64,000 bases of DNA from Cyanophora paradoxa CCMP329 (Eukaryota; Plantae; Glaucophyta): positions 1 to 64,000 of the forward strand of contig QPMI01000207.1 of assembly GCA_004431415.1 (NCBI GenBank). The letters are read 5' to 3'. This document shows positions 15,146 to 28,395 of the stretch, piece after piece. Below the pieces are notes generated by a model that was not told the origin of the DNA, ran no database searches, and was given only the letters and a program-made list of their open reading frames with translations. Each line of letters opens with the position of its first letter. Within the stretch, counting starts at the first letter, position 1. The position numbers and the translations under genes are program-made.

Positions 15146-15188
15146 AGTTGGACGAAAGTTGGACGAAAGTTGGACGAAAGTTGGACGA
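15146..15188 (+). repeat. 11-bp tandem repeat (AGTTGGACGAA) x~4
   Basis: Directly visible; about 170 bp upstream of the USP-Fanzor gene start. Confidence 0.95.
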
Positions 15189-15359: not shown

Positions 15360-18300
15360 ATGAACACGGTGCGCCGCACGAAAGCGCGCGTGCTGCGATA
15401 CAAACGAGCACGAGCCCCGCTAGCGCACGTATGCTAGCGCTTGCCTCGCCCCGCTCTCGCGCCATCTGGCCCGACGCCATCCCGGCTGCTTTCGCATTTG
15501 CCCGCTCGATCGACCGCGGTCGCCTCTTGCTTTCGCCTTTGCCTGGCTGACGTGCGCCCCCCCGCCCCCGGCGCCAGATCGGCCCCGCCGTCTGGGGTGC
15601 CGCCATCCTGGGGCCCCGCCTCGGGTTCATGAACGAGGGCAACGCGTGCTACGCCATCGCCGTGGTTCACTGCATCTCCACCATCCAGGCCATCGTCGCC
15701 GCCCTCGGCACAGAGAACTGGCAAGGCGGCGTCGCGGGACAGCTGCGGGAGCTCGTCTTGCAGGCGCGCGGGGCCGGGGGCGCGGCGCCCCTGGGGAGCT
15801 CGAACGCTCGCTAACGAGGCGCAGGTGTGCGAGGGGCGTCCCAACGGGGGAGGCGGCGTGCACTCGTGCCAGGAGCTCAAGCGAGCGGTGGCGGCCGCCG
15901 ATGCCGCATCCGACTCCCCGCCCAGAAGCCCGTGGAAATCGCCGTTCTGGGGCGCAACTCAGCAGGACGCGTACCTGTTCTTCGTGAAAATGTGCCAGGA
16001 GCTACCCAAAGCGGTAAAAGCCCGGCCCGCGCCCATCGCCTCCCCGGCGCCCCCGGCCCTCACGCCCGCGCACCGCCCGGGCAGGTCCAAGCAGCGTACA
16101 CGTTCGGCGTCCGACGGGACAGGAGGTGCGAACGATGCAAGTACACGTCCGCCGTCTTCGAGGAGCAGGGGGACATCCCCGGCGAACTCCCCCAGTCGAG
16201 CGGCGCCCCGACGCGCTCCAGCACCCTTGATCTCCTCCGTCGTTACTTCAAGGTGCGCAAGAGCGGAAACGCCGGCGCTGCCCCTCGCAAAAACGCCCCG
16301 GGCGCCGCAGGCGGACAAATTCGAGTGGACCTGCTGCTCTGGGTGCAAGCTGAAGACGGATGGGAAAGTGCTGACCCGGCTCGACGTCAGCACCCGCGAC
16401 GGGAAGGGGCAGCCCCGCGCGCCGCTGCCGCCCGCGCTGGTGGTGCACGTCGGACGCTGGACCCCCGGCAAGGACGCGCGGAAGCGCGACGACCCCGTCT
16501 ACCCCGACAAGCGCATCGACCTCACCAAGCTCGGGGAGAACGCCTTCTACCCGAACGTGCCCGAGCCCGGGAGCGCAACGTACACCCTCCGCGCCGTGCT
16601 GCGGCACCACGGCCTCACGCTGGACGGCGGGCACTACACGGTCCGCCCCCCCTACCCGCATAGAATGAGACATCGCGCCCGTCTCGTCGTCTCTCCCGCC
16701 TGCATCGACCCCCGCCCGCAGGTCGACGTGCTCTGGAACGGGAATTGGAGCCGGTGCAACGACAAGAGCGTCTCGCAGGCGAGGGGCCGCCCGCTGCGCC
16801 GTGCCCCGCGTGGAGCAGCGGGGGAGCGCCTCTCTCTTTATAAACCAGGCGACGGCGTCCGCAGGTGATGGAATCGGAGGTCCTCGGCGGAGGCGGCGAC
16901 GCGTACATGCTCTTCTACGAGAGAGAAGAGCACGTCGGCGGCGCGCCGGGTCCCTCGGCGTCGAGCCCCGGCCCCTCCCCGCCCGCGGTCGCTCCCGCGT
17001 CGCCATCCTACGCGGACGCGGTCCGGGGCCCGCGGGCGGCGGAGCCCGCCGCCGCCCCGGAGCAGGCGGCAGCCGGCCCGCCGGCTGCCCCAGCGCCGGC
17101 GCAGGCCGGCTCGCAGGCCGGCTCGCAGGCCGCCGCCCCGGCGCCGAAGCGGGGCAGGCCGGCTCCGGCCAAGGCGGCGGCGGCGGCGGCGGAGGAGGAG
17201 GAGGAGGCAGCGTCGGCGGCGGCGCAGGCCAGCTCGCAGGCCGCCGCCCCGGCGCCGAAGCGGGGCAGGCCGGCGAGCAAGGCCGATACGGCAGCGGCGG
17301 CGGAGGACGCGCCGCCGACGGAGTGGGCGGCGTGCGATCGGTGCACGAGGTGGCGGCGGCTACCCGCGGGGACGCACGTCGCGGGCGGAGCGCCGTTCTG
17401 CTGCACGGACCTCCGCGGGGTCACCTGCAAGACCCGGAGGACCGCTTGGACGACGACGAGGAGGATATCATCGCGGACAGCGCACAGGCCGCCGCCGCCC
17501 CGGAGGCTGCGACGCAGGCCAGCTCGCCGGCCGCCCCCGCCAGCCCCGCCGCCCCGAAGAAGCGGAGCCGGCGGAGCAAGGCGACGGGGGCCGCCGCTGC
17601 CCCGGAGCAGGCGGCAGCCGGCTCGCCGGCCGCCCCGGAGGCTGCGACGCAGGCCAGCTCGCCGGCCGCCCCCGCCAGCCCCGCCGCCCCGAAGAAGCGG
17701 AGCCAGCGGAGCAAGGCGACGGGGGCCGCCGCTGCCCCGGAGCAGGCGGCAGCCGGCTCGCCGGCCGCCCCGGAGGCTGCGACGCAGGCCAGCTCGCCGG
17801 CCGCCCCCGCCAGCCCCGCCGCCCCGAAGAAGCGGAGCCGGCGGAGCAAGGCGACGGGGGCCGCCGCCGCCCCGGAGCAGGCGGCGGCCGGCTTGCCGGC
17901 CGCCCCGGAGGCTGCGACGCAGGCCAGCTCGCCGGCCGCCCCCGCCGGCCCCGCCGCCCCGAAGAAGCGGAGGCGGCAGCAGGCGGCCGAGGCGACGGGG
18001 GCCGCCGCCTCCCCGGGCACGGGGCAGGACCCGGTTCGCGCCCCTCGCGCCCCCGCATGCGCTCCAGGCTGACATCTTGCCAGGTGGAGGGGTCCGAGGG
18101 CGAAAAGGTGGCGCACTCGGAGGGCTCTGGACAGGAGAAGGGTGGCGGACAGGAGCAGCAGCAGGAGAAGGAGAAGAAGGGGAAGCAGAGGTCGACGTTG
18201 GACCGCCACGACGCCCAGGCGAGGCCCCTCTCCCGCCCGCACCGCCCGCCCGCCCGCCCGCGCCTCCCAGACCAGCGCCGAACCCCCGCCGCGGCCGCGC

Positions 18301-21300
18301 AGAGAAAGGAGCACAGCCTGGCGCGCAAGAGGAAGAGCGAGAAGCAGAACACTAAGGAGGCTAGCACGCAGCGCACTCGCGCCCGTTGCGCCGCCCCGCA
18401 TCTCTTACCCCGCGCCCCGCGCAGAGAAAGGAGAAGGCGAAGAAGGGGGAGACCGCGAGGGCCGAGGCGAAGGCCGTGGACGCGGAGGCGACCCCCGCGG
18501 CGAAGAGTGAAGCGCCCGACCCGTCCCCGGCACCGACCCGCCCCGACAAGGCCTTGAGCGAGGTCCGGCACGCCCCGCACTCCCGCCCACCGCGCCGCGC
18601 GCCCCCCCTGCGCCGCCACGCTCACCCCCCTGCGCCGCCAGGAGGAGGAGGAGGTGCTGGGCAAGAAGGGGAGGGCTCGGATGCAGGCGGCGAAAGAGCA
18701 CCTGAAGCGGCGGAGGGAGGCAGCTGCAGCGGGCGAGGGGGCGGACGGCAAGGGCGAGGAGGGGCAGAGCGCCAAAAAGAAGAAGAAGAAGAACAAGAAG
18801 AAGAGCAACAACAAGAAGCCCCCGCAGCGCTGCGGCGGGTGCGGCGAGGCGTTCGCCGACGAGGACTACGCCGTGACCCCGAGCGGCCACCGGAGGCTGA
18901 AGATCGCGGAGGGCCACATCCTGCAGTGCGCGGCGGGCGGCGACGGCGAGGGCGACACCCACCACGCCCACCACGCCCGCTGCGCCAACCTCTGCGGCCG
19001 TTTCAAGGGCGTCCGGCGCGACGGCGACACCTGGACAGCCGTGTTCACGCGCGGGGACGGCGAGGCGTGTCCCCTCCCCCGTCCAGCCCCTCCCGCCACC
19101 CGCCCGCGCGCCGCCTGACCGCCGCCTCCCGCCCGTCAGACGGCGCGCGTCGCGGGCCTCCGCTCGGAGTGGGCGGCGGCCAGGGCCTTCGATCGCCTCG
19201 TCATCGCGGTGCACGGGCCGGAGAAGGCGCGGGACCTCACCAATTTCCCGCCGGAGCACTACAAGAGCCAGTGCTTCTTCCGGGGCCGGATCCCCGGCCG
19301 CGAGGAGCGGCCCGCCGCCTCGTGCTCCCTCGAGGCACGCCCTCCCTCACTCCCGCCCCTCCCTCCCTGCCCCTCCCTCACTCCCGCCCCTCCGCGCAGG
19401 AGATCGCGGAGGCCGTCGGGGCGTTCGGGCGGGCCGAGGACGAGGCGCTGGCCAAGTGCGAGGAGGACGAGCGGGCGGAGGCCGCGCGGCTGGCGGCGGC
19501 GAAGTCGCCGTCCTTCGAGGTGGACAAGGCGCGGCGCGCCCTGAAGAAGAAGAGGGAGGACGCGGCGCGCTTCGTGGCGATGCGCCTGCAGCACTTCGAG
19601 GACGCCATGGGCGCCTGGCCGTCGGGCAGGAAGAAGCGGGCGAGGCGGGAGGCGAGGACGCAGGCCAAGAAGGAGGGGATCCAGAAGTGCGCGGACGTCT
19701 GGGTCGAGAAGGCGGCGGCACGGCTGGCGGCGGCCGAGGCGAGGATGGCGGCGGCCGCGGCCGAGGCCGCGCCGGGGCCGGGCGGGCGGCGGGGCGGGCG
19801 GCGCAGCCCCTGGTACTGCCCCTGCCACCGCCTCGAGCCCGGCAAGGGCCCGCAGGCGGTCGCCGCCGACGTGGAGAAGACGCAGAAGCTGTGCGGCCCG
19901 ACCGACCCTCTGCGAGCGTCGCCCGCCGCCCCGCCGACGCCCGCCCCGCAGCGCGATCAAGGAGGGCGACGTGCTGCCCGCGCTCGTGACGGTGGCGGAG
20001 CGCACGGGCTTCGTCTGGGGGATGGCGGCAGCGGCGCGGAGGGGCACCCTCACCTTCTTCAACGAGAGAGTGAAGGAAGCCCTGAAATACGTGCGCGCTG
20101 CTTCTCGCTCTCGTCCCCCCGGGCTCATGCCCCTCGAGCCGTGCAAAGGCAGCATGGTCAAGGTGACCGAGCCCTCCCTTGTTGAGCCCTCGCAACCCCT
20201 GCCTCCGGGCTGACGAGCCTCGCGCCCCCCGCAGATATTCCCGCCGGAGGGCGGTCCCAAGTGCCGGCGCTGCACCCCCGAGGCGAAGTTCGCCAACATG
20301 CGGCAGCTCGCCGGGCACACGCGCCGCTGCGTGCGCGCCGCCCGCCCCTCCCACGCCGCTCACCTGCGGCTCCATCGGGGCCCCTTCGCCGTCTTACGCG
20401 CGCCCGTTCGTTCTCGGCACGGGGACCAGCACGAGGGCGCGGCGCTGGACTTCCCAGGGCCGTTCGCGTCCTCCCACCGCCTCCTCGCGAACCTGCCCTA
20501 CACCAACGAGATCCACGAGGTCCGAGATAGGGGCAAGATGCCGCCGCGGCCGGAGGGCGGCTACGCTGGAGCTAGCTTCATCATAGACGCCATCCTGAAA
20601 CAGCTGGATGGGCTGGGTGAGACCTCGCCCCCCCGACCCTGACCCTGGCGCGCGCGGAGGAGGGCGGCGGTGGCCTCGAGCTCACGGCCGGCGTGCAGCC
20701 CCCAGAGCGGAACAGGAGGGCGACCTCTACGACACCGCGAGGACGCGTGACGCGAAGACGCGGCGCACGGAGGACGGGGGCAAGGTCGCCCAAGCAGAGA
20801 CCACTGCAAGTCCCCTCAGCGCCCTCCCCACGCTCCGCTAGCCCGCGCCCCCACCGCCCCCGCCGACTCTGCTGCAGGAACTCTCCTGGTGGGCGTGCGA
20901 GAAGTGCGGCGAGGAGTGCCACACCAGGAGCGGGCTGAAGGCCCACAAGCCGGCTTGCCCCTCCAAGAAGAGCAAGGTGAGCCTTTCTTTTTTCTTGGGG
21001 GGGGGAGGGGGTGGGGGTGGGGAGGGGAGGGAGGGGAGGGGGTGGAGGGTGGGGGGTGGAGGGAGGGGGGGGGAGAGGGGAGGGGAGAGGGAGGGGGTGG
21101 GGCGGGAGGGGTGGGGGTGGGGGGGGGGGGGGGGAGGGGGGGGGGAGAGTTTTGTGGAGGGCCGCTCAGCCTAACCCCGCCCCTGCCATAACAGGGGAAG
21201 AGGGCAAGGGGCGACGACGAGGAGCAGGACGATGACGACGACGGCGGCAGCGGCGCCAACGAGGGAGAGGAGGCGAAGGAGGGAGCGCAGGCGCCCACGG

Positions 21301-22980
21301 CGTGCAGGAGGCGTTTCCTCCACACGGAGACGGAGGAGGAGAAGCAGAGTGTCAGGGACGCCGTCGAGGCAGCCGCGACCGCCTACAACGGGTACCGGTT
21401 CGTGACCTTGAGCTTCCGAAAGCAGGTGCGCGCGATCCTCGCAGCGCGGTGGTACGCGGCTCTGCCTTCGTCCGAGCGCGTCCTCTCGCGCAGATCCTGG
21501 ACCTCGTCCCCGCCCAGCGTCGGGCTGCCCTGCGCATCATCATCGCCAACAAGGAGAGCCCCCGGGACAAGAGCAAGACCGGCCTCCGCCTGGCGCTCGA
21601 GCAGATCCGCAGGGAGGTGCCCTCTGCCTCCCTGCCCGGGGGCGAACTGGGCGCGCCGCACGGCCGGCCGCCGACCCTGACCCGTGCCCTTCAGTTCGCG
21701 GAGGAGCGAGACAGGGAGAGGCGCAAGGAGGACCCCGGCTGTGGAAAGAAGACAGATGCCAGCGATGTGCTCAAAAGCAAGGTCCTCGACGCGATCGAGG
21801 AACAGCGCCCGACCAGCGTCGACGGGCTGATCGCCTGCAAAGTGCCCCGGGCCAAGGCCGCCAGCGCGTTCGGCAAGCGCCTGCTCGAATGCGTCAGCAG
21901 CCATGCAGCCGGAGCGCAGAGCAAGGCGCCGGCCCCCGTTCCCGCCACCCCGCCGGCTGCCCCGGCGCCTCCCGCCTCGCCCCCCGCCGGTACGTGCACC
22001 CCATTTATCACGCTCTGTACCCCCCGCAGAATCCCTCCCGACCCCTCCCGAGCAGGCGGGGCGGGGAAGAAGGCGGGGGGCGCGCGGGGGCCGACGGGCA
22101 AGAAGGCGAAGGGGACGTCGCAGAGAACGTCGCAGGGGACGACCCGGCCGCCGGCGCGGACGGCGCGCCGCCCCCCGGCGCCCCCGCCGCTGCCGGTGGA
22201 GGAGATGCGCAAGATGCGCGATGCGTACATCCGCACGCTGCCCCCCGGGCAGTGGGATCGCTCCATGAAGGCGGACTCCGCCATAAGGGGCATCGCGCTG
22301 GACGACTATCTGGCCGCGCTCCAGCGGCAGTTCGAGCGGCACAAGCCCGTCGCCCAACTCAGGTGACGTGGGGGGCGCGTTGCTCAGGGGCGCCCGTCGG
22401 CCTCCTGGACGTGACCCTCGCGCGTTTTCGCAGCCCCCGCAACTGGCACACCCGCGAGCGGATGTCCGCCGGCGTGAGCGGGTTCACCTACAACCAACCC
22501 AACAGCGCGTTCTGGAAGGACTTCAAGAAGATGTGGACGCACGAGGGGAAGATGCCGGACAAGATCGACCACGACTCGCGGCTCGTCCTCGAGCGCAGCG
22601 GCAGGGCCTGGTGCGGTCACGAGGGCGCAGGCCGCGCATCCCTGACCGCTGAGAGCCCCCGCAGGTTCTGCGAGCCGTGCGCGCCGAAGGAGACCCGCGC
22701 AGCGAAGCGGGGCGGCGCCGCCGGCTACGCGCGGGCCACGGCCAAGGAGATCAAGCTGCGCGGCGGCCGCCTGATCGCGCTCGACCCCGGGCGCGGCGCG
22801 ATGCGGCTCCACCTTACGCACCTTCGGGAGCGGGGGAGGCCCCCCGGTACCGGTCTCCCGGTCCGGGGCCCGTGGGGGTTCCGGCCCCCTCGGGCAGCAT
22901 TCCTCTCCCTTAGGGCCAGTCCGTGGCGGGAACGGGCGAGCCTCCGGGCACGGCCCGCACCTCTGATCTTTCGATCTTAA
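15360..22980 (+). CDS. Multidomain fusion: USP deubiquitinase - AT-hooks - CW zinc finger - repeats - AP2 - zinc fingers - TnpB/Fanzor2-like N-terminal half (HRDC-like insert, ends after RuvC-I)
   Basis: About 20 GT/GC-AG introns join one frame, with one 1-nt break near 17433. USP: GFMNEGNACY, QQDAYLF, GGHYT, WSRCND, AYMLFYER. CW: WAACDRCTRWRRLP. AP2: FKGVRRDGDTWTAVF..AARAFDRLVIAVHG..TNFP. TnpB-like: RRFLHTETEEEKQSVRDAVEAAATAYN, IRGIALDDYLAALQRQF, KIDHDSRLVLERSGRAWFCEP, RLIALDPG. Confidence 0.8.
17494..18010 (+). repeat. Coding tandem repeat, 135 bp (45 aa) x~3.8
   Basis: GAGGCT recurs at 17503, 17638, 17773 and 17908; unit PEAATQASSPAAPASPAAPKKRSRRSKATGAAAAPEQAAAGSPAA. Confidence 0.95.
20998..21148 (+). 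repeat. Intronic poly-G/purine tract (G-quadruplex-prone)
   Basis: About 150 nt of almost pure G runs inside intron 20977-21193. Confidence 0.85.
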
Positions 22981-22990
22981 GCCCGTAGGG
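22800..22990 (+). ncRNA. Candidate Fanzor omega-RNA scaffold / element right end
   Basis: Successive hairpins (22807-22838 with UUCG loop, 22838-22870, 22869-22894, 22926-22958) directly after the RuvC-I codons, where TnpB/Fanzor guide scaffolds lie. Confidence 0.4.
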
Positions 22991-23650
22991 TAAGTAGACC
23001 TAGGTTTCGATCTCGAGCTTCGGCATTCGATTTCGATTTTCGACGTCGCTTGCCTATCTGTCTGAGCCCTTACGATTCGACCGGCGGCCCACTGCTAGCC
23101 AAACAGCTACTAGGGCTAGTCCAGATGTCGTTGGTCGTGTCTGAAATGCAAGTCCGGCGTCGGTGTTTCCACGATGCCATCCAGGTGACACCTTTAGCCG
23201 GGCTTGCAGCGGCAATCTGCTCGCAGCTCTCCAGATCGTCGACGTCATCCGTCAACGTCGGAAGGTCGAACACTGTTGAGCTGTTGGTCATTTGACGGCT
23301 GAGCTGCCTGTCGCTGCTGCTGAAGCTCGCGGGACGTAGCGGCTCTAGCCACGCTTGGTTCGTACGCACGTTCTAACAGGGCCGGTTCTAGATGCTGGGT
23401 TCGGAACGATGCATTGTGCAAGCGCATTAACTTTAACTAATTTAACTAACTTTAAGCCATCAGAACACCTGTCCGAAGGCGGGCTCGAGCAGACCGTACC
23501 CCAACAAGCTTCAATCCTTTACCCCAGCTTCAGAAAAAAGTGCGAAACAACCGAGCTTCCGGAGGAGCAAGCAGCCGCCGCAGCTGTAGGCTGTAGGCTG
23601 TAGGCCGAAGCAGCTAAAGCCCAGAGCCAGCTCGCCGGGCCGGCGCCCGG

Positions 23651-26600
23651 ATGGCGGACGCGGAGAAGGCCGCGACGCAGGCAGAAGCGGAGGCTGTCGA
23701 TGACTCGCACATCCGAGTGGTCTTTGACAAGGACAGCTTCGCCGCCGGCGAGAGCGTCAGTGGCCAAATCTATGTTAGCCTGACCTGCAAAAAGTCGATC
23801 CAGGAGATCCGGGTACTTCCAGTGGCCATCTACGTAAGCTCTCAGCCTGTGAAGTTTAGCTACAGCTTTTATAAAGACGACCTGCGCAGCTATTCGACCC
23901 GCCCAAGGGCACCAAGCGCCTGCCTGGCTTCACAGGTCTGCCACGTAGCATGCCGGCCCGCCGGGCCGACCGCTCCTGACGCCTCATGCACCTGTCACGG
24001 AGCAGACAAGAGCCCGGAGACTGGCGTGGCGGCTGCCCCTCTCGGAGACTGTGAGCAAGCGGCCGCGCTCGAAACCTTCCGTTGGGGGCCGCTGAGCGCC
24101 CCGCCCGCAGGCATCTCGCTCGGCAAGGATGAGATCAAATGGTGGGCGATGCGCGGGATGCGCGCGTAGGGGCGGGGGGGCGGGCGGCTGACGGAGTGGC
24201 AGGAACTACCACCACGAGCACTACGTGCGGACGATGGCGGGGGCGCCCGTGGGGCCCCTGGAGGCCGTGCACGAGGAGCGCATCGAGTACGACTTCCCCT
24301 TCAGCTTCACGCTTCCCGCCAAGCTGCACCCCACCTTCACCCGCTTCGGCGGCTTCACCGCCAAGTGCCGCCCCTCGCCCGCCCCGCCCCGCCCCGCCCC
24401 GCCGCGCCCCGGGGCGAGGCCCGAGCGGTGGGCAGGTACGCGGCGGTGGTGTCGGTGGACCGGATGAAGCCCGGGGCGGAGCCGGGCGCCCCCGCCCTCG
24501 CCACCGTCACCGCGCCCCACTACTTCGCCGTCCACGTCCCGGTACCCCCGCCCCCCGCCTCGCCTCTGCCGGGGGCCGACGGCGGGCAGGACTCGGCGGC
24601 GGAGAAGGTGGAGCCGCCGAAGGCCGGGGGCGCGAACGTGACGAAGGCCTTCGGCGCCATGTCCATGAACCTCGCGTTCGCCCGCCCAGCCCCGGCCCGC
24701 CCGCCCCGGCGCTGAGGCCGCCGCAGCGCGCGGCTCTCGACGCCGACGCCCGATCCCGGGGCGACCTGCGTCCTCTACATCGACCTCGCCAACTGGTCCC
24801 GCCGCAAGGTCCCCGGGGCCCCGGCGCCCCGCCGGCCCCGCCCCGCCCCGCCGTGTTTGAGGCGCGGCGCGGCGCAGGTGACGGACTTCGTGCTGCGCGT
24901 GAAGGAGATCGCCAAGGTGGAGGCGATGGGGTACAAGTTCGGGCGGGAGCGGGCGGTGCTGGAGCGCAAGTTCGCGGCGGCGTTCGAGGGGCAGGTCGGG
25001 GGCAACGCGTACGCGAAGAAGAGCCTGGCGCTGGACGTGCGCGTGCCCCCGCAGGCCCGCCCCTTCGCCTCCTCCTTCCTCGAGCTCAAGTGGGTCATCG
25101 AGGCGCGCCCCCCCCGCCCCGCCCGCCCCGCCCCGCGGCGGGGGCGTGAGGGCGGGGGGCGGGGCAGGTGGCGGCGCTGCTCGACGGGACGGACGAGAGC
25201 GTCGAGCTGCAGCTGCCCCTCGTCACCGTCCGCCCCGCCCCCGCCGGCCCCGCCCCGCCCCGCCCCTCACCCGCGGGGCGCAGAGCGCGGTCTTCGTGAA
25301 CCTGCCGCGGGCGCCGGGGGCCGTCCCCAGCAACCCGCCCTCATCGCCGCCCTCCTCAAGCGCGCCCTCGCCGAGCAGGTCCCTCCCGCCCCGCCCCCCA
25401 CCCGCCCCCCGCCTCTGCAGCCGACGCGGCCGGCGAGTGCGGTAGACGCTGCTCAAGGCCTTCACGCCGCCGGCGGCGGCGCCGAAGCCGGCCCCGGCGG
25501 CGGCGGCGGCCAACGCATTCAAGTCGGCCCTGCTCTCCAAGCTCAAGCGCGCCGCCGCCGCCGGGCGGCCGCCGGGGCGCAGGGCGGCCCCGGGGCGGGG
25601 GCGGGGGCGGGGGCGGGGGCGAGCAAGGCGGTGAAGAGCCGGAGCTCCTCGGGGAGCGCGCCGGCGTCGCAGGCCTCCCTCGCCCCGGCCCCCGAGGAGG
25701 AGGCGGCGGCGGCGCAGGCCAAGCCCAAGGGTGGCATCCGCTTCAGCGAGGGGACGGCGGGGGGCGACGGGGAGGCGGGGGGGGCGGGGAGGGAGGGCGG
25801 GCTGGCGGGGATGGGCCACTCGGTCAAGGCCGGCCGCTTTCTCAACCTCGACCTCGCCGCCATCGGCGCCGCCGCCGGCGCCGGTCCCGCCCGCTCGGAG
25901 GAGGAGAAGGAGGAGGAGGCCGGGGAGGCGCCCAAGACGGGCCGCGCCAAGAAGAGCGCCCGCTTCGCCGCGGCCGGCGGCGAGGAGCGCAACCGCTCCT
26001 TCCTGAAGCCCGGGGGCGGCACCTCGCGGCGCTCCGACGGCTCCGCGACGGACCGCTCGCAGTTCAGCATCCGCGTCAACCAGGTGCGTGCCTGTCTGTG
26101 CCTGTCTCCCGCGCGGCCCGCAGGCCCGCCCGCCGCGCGGGGCACGGAGGCTGACGCGGCCGCAGAGCAAGTCGGAGGAGCACCTGGCGAAGGGGACGGG
26201 CAAGGCCCCCGCGCAGGCCCCCGCCAGCAAGTTCCAGAAGGTCAGTTCTGCGGCCCCGGGGCGCGGCGCGGGCCGCCCGCGAGCGTCGGGTGCATGTAGA
26301 TGGCGGGCCTGCTGCGGATGGCGGCGAAGATCGAGCACGACAAGAAGGCCGAGGCGGCGGCGGCCGGCGGGGACGGGGCCGAGAAGCCGCCGGAGAAGAG
26401 CAAGTCCATCCGCGGCGTCCTGGCGGCGCTGATCCAGCGCAAGGCGCGGCGGGACGAGGAGGGCGAGGAGGGGGGGTACCGGAGCGTGAAGAGCACGCGG
26501 AGCTCGCGCAGCGTCAAGAGCGCTAAGAGCGTCAAGGCCTCGAAGAGCAGCAAGAGCGTCAAGCTCGCGAGGCCGGCCGCCGGCGAGGCCGAGGGCGAGG

Positions 26601-28395
26601 AGGAGGAGGAGGCGGGGTCGCCGGGCCCGGGCTCCCTGTCGGCCTCCCCGAGCGCGAAGGGGTCGCCCCTGAAGGGCGCCCCGGGGGCCGACTTCCCCGA
26701 GCCGCCTCCGCCCCACGCCCCCGGCGCGCCCCCGCACCGCCCCGAGAGCGCCAGCGCCGCCAGCGCGGCAAGTGGCCGCCCCGCCAGCGCCGCCAGCGCC
26801 CGGCCCGGGAGTGCGGCGAGCGCCCGCCCTCCGAGCGCAGCTAGCGCCCGGCCCGGCAGCGCGGCAAGCGTGCGGCCCGCCAGCGCGGCGAGCGCGCCGC
26901 CGCCGCCGCCGCAGCCGCAGCCGCAGCCGGAGGCGCAGGCTGCGGGGGAGCGGCCCAAGGGGTGGCTCCTGAAAGCGTTCAGCGCGGCGGCGAAGGCACT
27001 GGAGGCGGCGGAGGCGGGTGCGGGGAGGCGGGGAGGGCGGGGCGAGGAGGAGGACCTGGAGGCCGGGGTGGTGCAGGACGACGACGACGGCGCCTTCGAG
27101 CGCGCCGTCGCCCGCGCCGAGGGCACCCGCCCCGCCCCCCCTCCCCGTCAAGCCCCGCCCCGCCCCACCGCCCCACCCCGGACCCGGCCCCGGCCCCGGC
27201 CCCGGCCCGGGCCCTCCCAGCCTCCCCGGGGACGCGCCCTCGGCGGCCGCTCATCGAAGAAGACGAGGAGGAGGAGGAGGCGGCGGCGGTGGTGGCGGCG
27301 GCGGAGGAGGAGGAGGCGCCGGGGCCGTGGGAGGCACCCGAGGCGCCCCTGGAGGGCGCGGGGGCGGCGTTCGGGGAGGAGGGGGCGGCGGGGGCCGGGC
27401 TCTTCGGGAGCCCCGGGGTGGGCGAGCGGCGGCGGCCAGCCTCGGCGATGGCGCGCTCGGCCAGCGTGCCCTCGTCCCCGAGCCCGAGGCCCGCCGCCGG
27501 CCCAGAGCGCCCTCGAGCGCCACCCAGCCGCCCCGCCAGCCCCGCCCGCCCAGCCGCCCCGGCAGCCCGCTGCGGCCCAGCCGCCCGGGAGCCCGAGCGG
27601 GGCGCGCCCGGGCTCGCCGCCCCGCCGCTGCCGCGGATGCGGGACTGCTGCGAGCGGAAGCCGTCGGTGCCGCGCCAGGCCCTCTCCCCGGAGCGGGAGG
27701 CGCGGCGGTACCGCCTCGGGGCGGAGGCGTGGCCGGACTACGAGGAGGAGCTGCGGGCGATCGCGGGGCAGGAGTGGGCGCCGGAGCCGCGCGAGGGGGC
27801 GCGGGGGCGGCGCGCCCTCGTCTCCGCGCAGGCGCTCGCCGCCGTGCTCGGGATGCAGCTCGCCGAGGTCGAGGCCGTCCTCCTCGGGCCCCGCCCCGCC
27901 GAGCGGCCCCCGCCCCACCCCGCCCACCGCTTCGGCGCCTACGGGCCCCGCTGGCACGTGTGGGAGGTGAGCGCGCGGGAGCAGGAGGCGGGGGCGGCGC
28001 GCCGCTACCAGGTCCGTAACTTCGATGAGGTGCGCGGCGTCTACGCCGCCGCCTCCTCCCGAGCCCGCCGCCGCCTCCTCACCGCCCCCGCCGCCTACCC
28101 CGCCATGGGCCACTCCCCCTCGGGCCTCTCCCTCGCTGCCTCCGCCTCGGCGGCCTCGCTGCTCGAGCCGACGCGGGGGCACGCGCGCGCGAGCCTCTCG
28201 CGGCCGGGGACGGCCGGCAAGGCGCGCGGGGGCGAGGCGCAGCTCTACGGGGTGGGCCAGCCGCACGCGCACCACGCCTCGGCGGCGCAGCTGCGGCCGG
28301 CGAGCGCGGGGGCGCGGCCCCCGGCGCCCCTCGCCGCCTCGCGCAGCGCCAGCACGCCCGTACTCATCGGCGGCTGGGGCCGCCACCTCCCCTGA
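23651..28395 (+). CDS. Arrestin-domain protein with long low-complexity C-terminus
   Basis: IRVVFDKDSFAAGESVSGQIYV, YDFPFSFTLPAKLHPTF, YIDLANWSRRKV, LDVRVPP..PFASSFLELKW; micro-exons at 23890-23935 and 24006-24023. Confidence 0.7.

Follow-up and report, generated by a model that had tools for sequence, protein, structure and literature searches.

A probably damaged copy of a USP–CW–Fanzor2 fusion gene in the nuclear genome of Cyanophora paradoxa

The window analyzed in this work is a stretch of 64,000 nucleotides from Cyanophora paradoxa CCMP329 (contig QPMI01000207.1, corresponding to C. paradoxa contig tig00000880), and the gene in question runs along its forward strand from 15360 to 22980. 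A first-pass annotation had described this gene as a USP deubiquitinase and chromatin-reader protein fused to a nuclease-truncated Fanzor, and had offered two readings of the fusion, namely a domesticated RNA-guided DNA binder that delivers a deubiquitinase to chromatin, or a Fanzor mobile element that uses the additional domains against silencing. The comparisons reported here uphold the fusion and change the reading of the truncation. The window probably holds a damaged copy of a USP–CW–Fanzor2 fusion gene, the intact form of which is found on tig00021617, and would be one of at least two near-identical copies of a nuclear gene of C. paradoxa.

The Gene and Its USP-Containing Half

The window is eukaryotic, with a GC content of 65–81%, and the gene is nuclear. 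Its exons are matched at 100% identity by a public EukProt model of C. paradoxa, tig00000880_g5166.t1 (3108 aa, 15629-28392), which runs the USP–Fanzor gene into a downstream arrestin-like gene by way of a supposed intron at 22864-23680. The model is probably an annotation merge of two genes, its supposed intron spanning a repeat and the intergenic region. Spliced products were analyzed as the stored database models tig00000880_g5166.t1 and, for the sister copy, tig00021617_g22932.t1; exons were otherwise searched singly. Read in order, the mRNA would encode a USP, two AT-hooks, a CW-like finger, low-complexity and Cys/His-rich regions and a Fanzor2 module. The features of the first half are the following:

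15360 (+): start codon ATG, read from the sequence
15360-16921 (+): USP (peptidase C19) domain, split by introns, from Pfam UCH and PDB phmmer
15623-15661 (+): Cys box of the USP, aligned to USP21
16581-16643 (+): His box of the USP, read from the translation
16895-16921 (+): closing motif GDAYMLFYE, the Asp box of the first-pass annotation, read from the translation
17144-17164 and 17255-17275 (+): two KRGRP AT-hooks, read from the translation, within a 111-bp duplicated unit
17324-17428 (+): CW-type zinc-finger-like motif, sub-threshold for Pfam zf-CW, with a readable Cys/Trp pattern
17490-17977 (+): 135-bp tandem array of 3.6 copies, 97% identical, coding for an Ala/Pro/Lys-rich stretch

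The Pfam UCH profile matches the raw open reading frame (ORF) at 9.4e-10 and the annotated spliced product at 1.2e-14 (55 bits, cut-off 23.9), and the Cys, His and Asp boxes named by the first-pass annotation are all present. The matches of this part among PDB chains (phmmer) are the catalytic cores of USP21, USP15 and USP2, with E about 1e-6; the sequence NEGNACY of the window aligns to NLGNTCF of USP21, and GHYT is present. By profile and by its Cys and His boxes, the module is a member of the USP deubiquitinase family with predicted activity. It shares the UCH profile and both boxes with USP21, USP2 and USP15, to which the window protein is nevertheless a distant relative.

Both AT-hooks of the first-pass annotation are readable as KRGRP. 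The two arose from one tandem duplication (17112-17332, 111-bp unit). The CW finger has a readable Cys/Trp pattern and is borderline by its Pfam score, which reaches 22.3 bits in the window and 25.8 in the sister copy against a zf-CW cut-off of 27.5. Around 17112-17977, the GC-rich sequence is free of stops in any frame, and the public models of both copies drift between frames there.

Transcripts and the Fusion Junction

Contigs of four public runs were compared with 17350-23340: three are spliced RNA assemblies from two studies, and one is unspliced DNA. The RNA contigs back 17 introns between 18.2 and 22.7 kb, which are GT-AG apart from one GC-AG intron (20806-20877) and three short ones (18216-18299, 18358-18422 and 19333-19397), the ends of which are not placeable on GT/AG. 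These introns agree with tig00000880_g5166.t1 except for 20977-21194 and for 20091-20133, which the model reads through. The former is the intron at which the two parts of the gene meet:

20977-21194 (+): GT-AG intron, phase 0 and in frame, between the last zinc-finger exon and the first Fanzor-like exon; the RNA joint runs from 20976 to 21195/21197

Because the 20976|21195 junction is in frame in RNA contigs, and it is seen in contigs from two studies, the zinc-finger and Fanzor-like exons belong to one mRNA rather than to two separate genes, the alternative that the first-pass annotation had named. One RNA contig of 2160 nt extends from about 20.56 kb through exons in 21193-22359 to beyond 22.36 kb. 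The proposed GT/GC-AG splicing is therefore backed by RNA from 18.2 to 22.7 kb; the USP part is read as continuous with the exons from 18.2 kb on the strength of ORFs and gene models.

Two observations concern the RNA contigs themselves. The intron at 20977-21194 is filled by a G-rich, G-quadruplex-like low-complexity array (20997-21149), in which short-read contigs drop out. Each of the three RNA assemblies also has a contig in which 19942 leads back to 17935, the two sides being separated by 16 extra letters that are identical in all three (depth 30-35). This contig could be a chimera formed at a shared repeat, or it could stem from a transcript of another locus.

The Fanzor2 Module of the Window Copy

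Downstream of the junction, the exons are organized as follows:

21195-21425 (+): first Fanzor-side exon, with an acidic linker and a putative first strand and helix ending in YN (21306-21389), from homologue alignment
21426-21493: intron, from RNA contigs
21494-21989 (+): lineage-specific insertion of ~190 aa with an HRDC-like helical segment (21764-21895) and a low-complexity tail, interrupted by an intron at 21617-21694
22056-22792 (+): Fanzor2 WED/REC region and first RuvC strand, from hhalign, with introns at 22363-22433 and 22611-22664
22280-22342 (+): REC motif
22564-22611 (+): WED strand
22768-22791 (+): RLIALDPG of RuvC-I, with the Asp codon at 22783

The product of the window gene, taken as tig00000880_g5166.t1:1417-1836, was compared by hhalign with a profile built from 29 independent Fanzor2/TnpB proteins, from which the Cyanophora proteins were excluded; the result was a probability of 94.9 with E 4.3e-8 over 101 columns. 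Both the REC motif and the WED strand named by the first-pass annotation lie within this match, and the TnpB-like motifs of that annotation are thus found in the proposed places and order at a level beyond chance. The Asp codon at 22783 aligns to D324 of ApmFz, the mimivirus Fanzor2, in a column that is invariant in 30 sequences. The N-terminal helix ending in YN aligns as proposed to T..Q...L..W.G.ARW.YN of the Fanzor2/TnpB homologues, although it is not significant alone (E 0.44). Searched singly, the exon pieces gave chance matches only with PDB phmmer and PHROGs, because they are too short and too diverged. At the level of sequence, the C-terminal exons of the window gene are Fanzor2/IS607-TnpB-like, as had been proposed.

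The ~190-aa insertion is absent from all 29 aligned homologues and has a low predicted local distance difference test score (pLDDT) in the structural model described below; its HRDC-like segment scores 16.4-21.1 bits in Pfam against a cut-off of 23.8. The module carries at least five spliceosomal introns. The RuvC-II Glu, the RuvC-III Asp and the zinc ribbon are not in the window, where no Pfam TNB match was obtained.

The Intact Sister Copy and Its Relatives

The missing part is found in a second C. paradoxa protein. A full HMMER scan of 1.84 billion representatives with the query 22432-22977 retrieved tig00021617_g22932.t1 (1839 aa), which is 96% identical over the first 121 residues of the query and ~95% identical overall. 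The same scan retrieved a shorter piece of the gene in a model of tig00021537; its other matches were spurious repetitive bacterial proteins. The sister copy has the same layout as the window, with USP, AT-hooks, CW and zinc fingers, and its public model already bears the precomputed Pfam labels UCH, zf-CW and TNB. After ALDPG, it continues for 224 further residues with LRDFL (in DPGLRDFL), EAYTSKTCGRCG and DRDVNGARN.

Sequence and structure comparisons agree on the nature of this continuation. The Pfam family Cas12f1-like_TNB matches the nuclease lobe at 1.1e-15, and the best PDB phmmer match of the sister copy is 9b0l (mimivirus Fanzor2 L79, 4.3e-13), in which its Asp and Glu align to D324 and E467. 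These residues are catalytic in ApmFz, which is killed by their mutation (PMC10530073). The catalytic D, E and D are all invariant in the 30-sequence alignment. An AlphaFold (AF2) model of tig00021617_g22932.t1:1240-1839 has a mean pLDDT of 67.6, rising to about 90 in the RuvC lobe, and its best match is again 9b0l (Foldseek 1.2e-15; VIA Z 20.5, 352 residues aligned). Whole TnpB chains (8h1j/8exa of ISDra2 and 8iaz of ISFba1) align to model residues 205-571 with Z 15-16, and the part of the sister copy equivalent to the WED/REC region of the window aligns structurally to TnpB residues 1-185 and to 9b0l. The C-terminal 224 residues of the sister copy, together with ALDPG, are unambiguously a TnpB/Fanzor nuclease lobe; the comparison with TnpB/Fanzor profiles and structures named by the first-pass annotation has in this way confirmed the identity. 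The DNA run contains the variants of each copy, and the RNA contigs carry a mixture of them, so the sequenced strain has both copies and transcribes them.

The nuclease lobe has 168 homologues at 40-46% identity, including Lipomyces, Chloropicon, Klebsormidium and many metagenomic sequences. The search was restricted to words of the RuvC region; the whole 600-aa query had returned nothing, low-complexity words crowding the candidates. The metagenomic homologues bear the Pfam labels HTH_OrfB_IS605, OrfB_IS605 and Cas12f1-like_TNB. The closest relatives are standalone, intronless genes of 400-600 aa on gene-dense, intron-free contigs with ankyrin and F-box proteins and a PIF1-type helicase. In our reading these contigs look like giant-virus genomes, which would fit a Fanzor2 lineage shared with such viruses.

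Compared with the mimivirus enzyme (ApmFz/L79, 9b0l), the sister copy shares DPGLRDFL, the aligned D324 and E467 and the order WED/REC–RuvC–TNB. The window copy retains the sequence through the D324 equivalent, and everything after RuvC-I is gone. ApmFz stands alone, at about 520 aa, and its N terminus bears no more than a disordered nuclear localization signal, or NLS (PMC10530073). In contrast, the Cyanophora protein has ~1,400 aa of USP, AT-hook, CW and zinc-finger sequence ahead of the module, the ~190-aa insertion and at least five introns. It differs from TnpB of the IS607/IS605 type in being encoded by a eukaryotic, nuclear and spliced gene with no TnpA nearby. Neither transposon ends nor an omega-RNA were identifiable in the window.

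Truncation at the Repeat Junction

The point at which the two copies part coincides with the edge of a repeat:

22793-23150 (no strand assigned): high-copy dispersed repeat of ~360 bp that replaces the rest of the Fanzor gene, from contig depth and flank divergence
22978-22980 (+): stop codon of the window ORF, inside the repeat

Homology to the sister copy ends at 22791/22792, three codons past the RuvC-I Asp, and sister residues 1616-1839 have no tblastn match anywhere in the 64 kb. At 22792, contig depth jumps from ~20-33 to 1353 and then 8044 in DNA, and from ~10-30 to 148-2013 in RNA, falling back after ~23150. This corresponds to a 50- to 300-fold excess for the repeat, which is abundant in the RNA assemblies too, over a gene body of single-copy-like depth. 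Contigs of other copies of the repeat share with one another, just before 22792, a sequence different from that of the window, and they diverge from one another at 23146-23152. Because of this depth jump and flank divergence, 22793-23150 is read as a left-truncated member of a family of a few hundred copies. No Rfam family, tRNA-like part or internal inverted repeat was detected in it, and it has no other copy in the 64-kb window. Past the repeat, only ~500 bases of non-coding-looking sequence lead to the arrestin-like gene; the repeat has therefore not simply been inserted into a Fanzor gene that resumes on its far side.

The Fanzor module thus appears to have been cut three codons after the RuvC-I aspartate and replaced from 22793 by the repeat, through a lesion that may have been a deletion or a rearrangement. 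With this, the window copy has lost the catalytic Glu, the second Asp and the zinc ribbon, as well as the place where the guide RNA is usually encoded. Judged from its sequence, it is unable to act as an RNA-guided nuclease and is probably also unable to take up a guide RNA.

The first-pass annotation had instead seen in the truncation a domesticated, nuclease-dead Fanzor that the host retains to deliver a deubiquitinase to chromatin, by RNA guidance or by DNA binding. Between the zinc-finger exons and DPG, the ORF is indeed unbroken and spliced in RNA, the WED/REC region is recognizably conserved, and the USP, AT-hook and CW-like parts would suit work on chromatin. Such a history is nevertheless very unlikely. 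The whole RuvC/zinc-ribbon lobe has been lost and not just the catalytic residues, and the place where a guide RNA is usually encoded, at the 3′ end of the ORF and past it, is missing too. The boundary of the repeat falls on the very base of the cut and the tail is repeat-encoded, while the sister copy is complete with its catalytic residues intact. A frame break lies just after the CW finger, and the differences between the copies are mostly nonsynonymous. Rfam, searched with no covariance model of Fanzor2 guides, gave no RNA family in 22500-23700, the 1.2 kb around and downstream of the cut.

Bacterial dead TnpBs of the TldR type are regulators conserved with an adjacent guide RNA; they keep the RuvC fold and guide-RNA binding and lose only catalytic residues or short segments. 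The window copy likewise encodes a TnpB-family protein without nuclease, in principle a targeting module, but unlike them it lacks a whole lobe at a repeat junction and has an intact sister. With the repeat junction, the intact sister, the missing half and the frame break, the domesticated binder of the first-pass annotation is not upheld, and its "nuclease-truncated" character is quite likely damage to this copy rather than the design of a domesticated dead nuclease. The other option, a Fanzor element using these domains, may still hold for the intact copy.

The repeat also bears on a different explanation, in which the USP-to-Fanzor unit is cargo of a large mobile element. The 360-bp repeat would be its right end, where a guide RNA has its place; the window and tig00021537 would be internally deleted, and the repeat family would be miniature, non-autonomous offspring. 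At least three loci do carry pieces of the gene. In the tig00021537 model, the first USP exons run into a longer form of this repeat, and the model peptide translates the flank seen in loose contig ends. Two of the three detected copies end in the repeat at different internal points, as independent internal deletions of a DNA transposon would. However, no terminal inverted repeats were found, and the upstream flank shares no similarity with the repeat. No transposase or recombinase (serine recombinase and TnpA included) is present at the locus, which has ordinary host genes close on both sides, an MFS transporter and the arrestin-like gene. The gene body, moreover, is at single-copy-like depth. 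This explanation is regarded as unlikely.

Assembly, Constraint and Origin

A second difference between the copies lies in the first half of the gene. The 1-nt break that the first-pass annotation had seen in a C run is present in the assembly by comparison with the sister copy: at ~17433-17435, directly after the CW-like finger, the window has ACC-CGG-AGG, one C short of what the reading of the sister protein needs. It may be a second lesion of the window copy.

Several observations weigh against the reading of the window as a damaged copy of the fusion gene. The break at 17433 could be an error of long-read assembly in a homopolymer, and the junction at 22792 could be an assembly error as well, given that contig-level data cannot bridge the repeat. 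No single RNA contig joins the USP exons (15.4-17.4 kb) to the exons from 18.2 kb, because the contigs break in the 135-bp array at 17490-17977. The two copies could be alleles, paralogues or transposed copies. Finally, a partial list of differences between them comprises 17 nonsynonymous, 9 synonymous and 6 intronic changes, a dN/dS of roughly 0.7. As the exon differences stand at 17:9, weak constraint on the whole fusion is suggested, and it may be that not even the intact copy is functional.

Taken furthest, the doubts about the assembly would leave the real gene of the window intact like the sister copy, with one or both of the two lesions produced by long-read assembly of very GC-rich DNA. 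The frame break does fall in a homopolymer run and the breakpoint at a repeat edge, where assemblers mis-join, and the RNA contigs crossing 22056-22792 extend several hundred bases past their listed match to the window. On the other side, ordinary sequence leads from the repeat into the next gene, and a simple collapse is not obvious. The third locus has a comparable junction from USP to repeat, and none of the four public runs shows an indel at 17433, although this is weak evidence. On balance, an artefact of this kind is rather improbable, a little more so than the mobile-element cargo.

The weak constraint raises a further possibility, which concerns the origin of the fusion. Fanzors are carried by mobile elements and viruses (PMC3627910, PMC10530073), and the closest relatives found here are standalone genes on giant-virus-like contigs. 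A Fanzor2 element or a giant-virus fragment might have landed at the 3′ end of a USP/CW gene and been spliced in by accident, with no selected function and both copies now decaying. The nonsynonymous-to-synonymous count of ~17:9 would be in line with this, as would the state of the loci, at least one copy being broken and the tig00021537 locus keeping only the USP first exon and the repeat. Against it stand the junction, which contigs from two studies show to be a canonical GT-AG intron of phase 0 that keeps the frame, and the five or more introns of the Fanzor part, which resemble those of the rest of the gene and argue for long residence. The intact copy also holds ~1800 codons open with all three catalytic residues. 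An accidental fusion is a tentative possibility that deserves more credit than the other alternatives. The reading of the window as a damaged copy of the fusion gene preserved on tig00021617 is the one that we consider probable.

Implications

In the intact copy, a complete fusion protein would be made, and its N-terminal module might bring the nuclease to chromatin or remove ubiquitin there. It is conceivable, although doubtful at present, that C. paradoxa makes a natural effector-fused RNA-guided nuclease, with a USP, AT-hooks, a CW-like finger and an active Fanzor2 in one polypeptide, of which the window is a recently broken copy. If true, guide-RNA-directed DNA recognition would be coupled to chromatin reading and ubiquitin removal. 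Engineered editors have been built by fusing chromatin effectors to RNA-guided proteins, and eukaryotes or their mobile elements would have reached the same design. Such a protein would also offer a handle on how Fanzor nucleases deal with chromatin.

Surveys of the family describe natural Fanzors as compact nucleases that stand alone and carry, at most, an additional NLS (PMC10530073). In the searchable full-text literature, no USP with a Fanzor/TnpB module and no Fanzor fused to a deubiquitinase was found, in keeping with the first-pass annotation, which knew of no described USP-CW-AP2-Fanzor fusion; two survey papers mention only N-terminal NLS regions. The USP–CW–Fanzor2 architecture therefore appears undescribed, the gene models themselves being public. 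The copy worth studying is the intact one on tig00021617 and not that of the window, and the "dead nuclease" reading is best dropped.

Middle Exons and Flanking Sequence

Between the tandem array and the fusion junction, the exons of the window match those of tig00000880_g5166.t1 exactly:

18423-20976 (+): middle exons, with a K/E-rich region, Cys/His clusters, an AP2-like stretch and two C2HC-like fingers
18996-19040 and 19185-19250 (+): AP2-like stretch (unconfirmed)
20262-20330 and 20896-20958 (+): C2HC-like fingers, readable by eye
18561-18639, 19063-19137, 19333-19397, 19891-19951, 20091-20133, 20161-20232, 20331-20429, 20616-20697 and 20806-20877 (GC-AG): introns, from RNA contigs

The AP2 domain of the first-pass annotation is not supported: in neither copy did the spliced region give a Pfam match at E<=5, and the sole other lead is a weak feature score of 0.77 to an AP2 cluster. 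The C2HC-like motifs of its zinc fingers are readable, but Pfam recognizes nothing significant in the middle exons.

Of the two flanking genes, the arrestin-like neighbor downstream lies just under the Pfam cut-offs (Arrestin_N 27.3 bits against 27.7, Arrestin_C 24.7 against 24.9), and the MFS transporter upstream is a fragment on the opposite strand. With no similarity to the downstream repeat and no sign of an IS607-type end, an array of four perfect tandem copies of the 11-mer AGTTGGACGAA occupies 15146-15188, ~170 bp upstream of the ATG.

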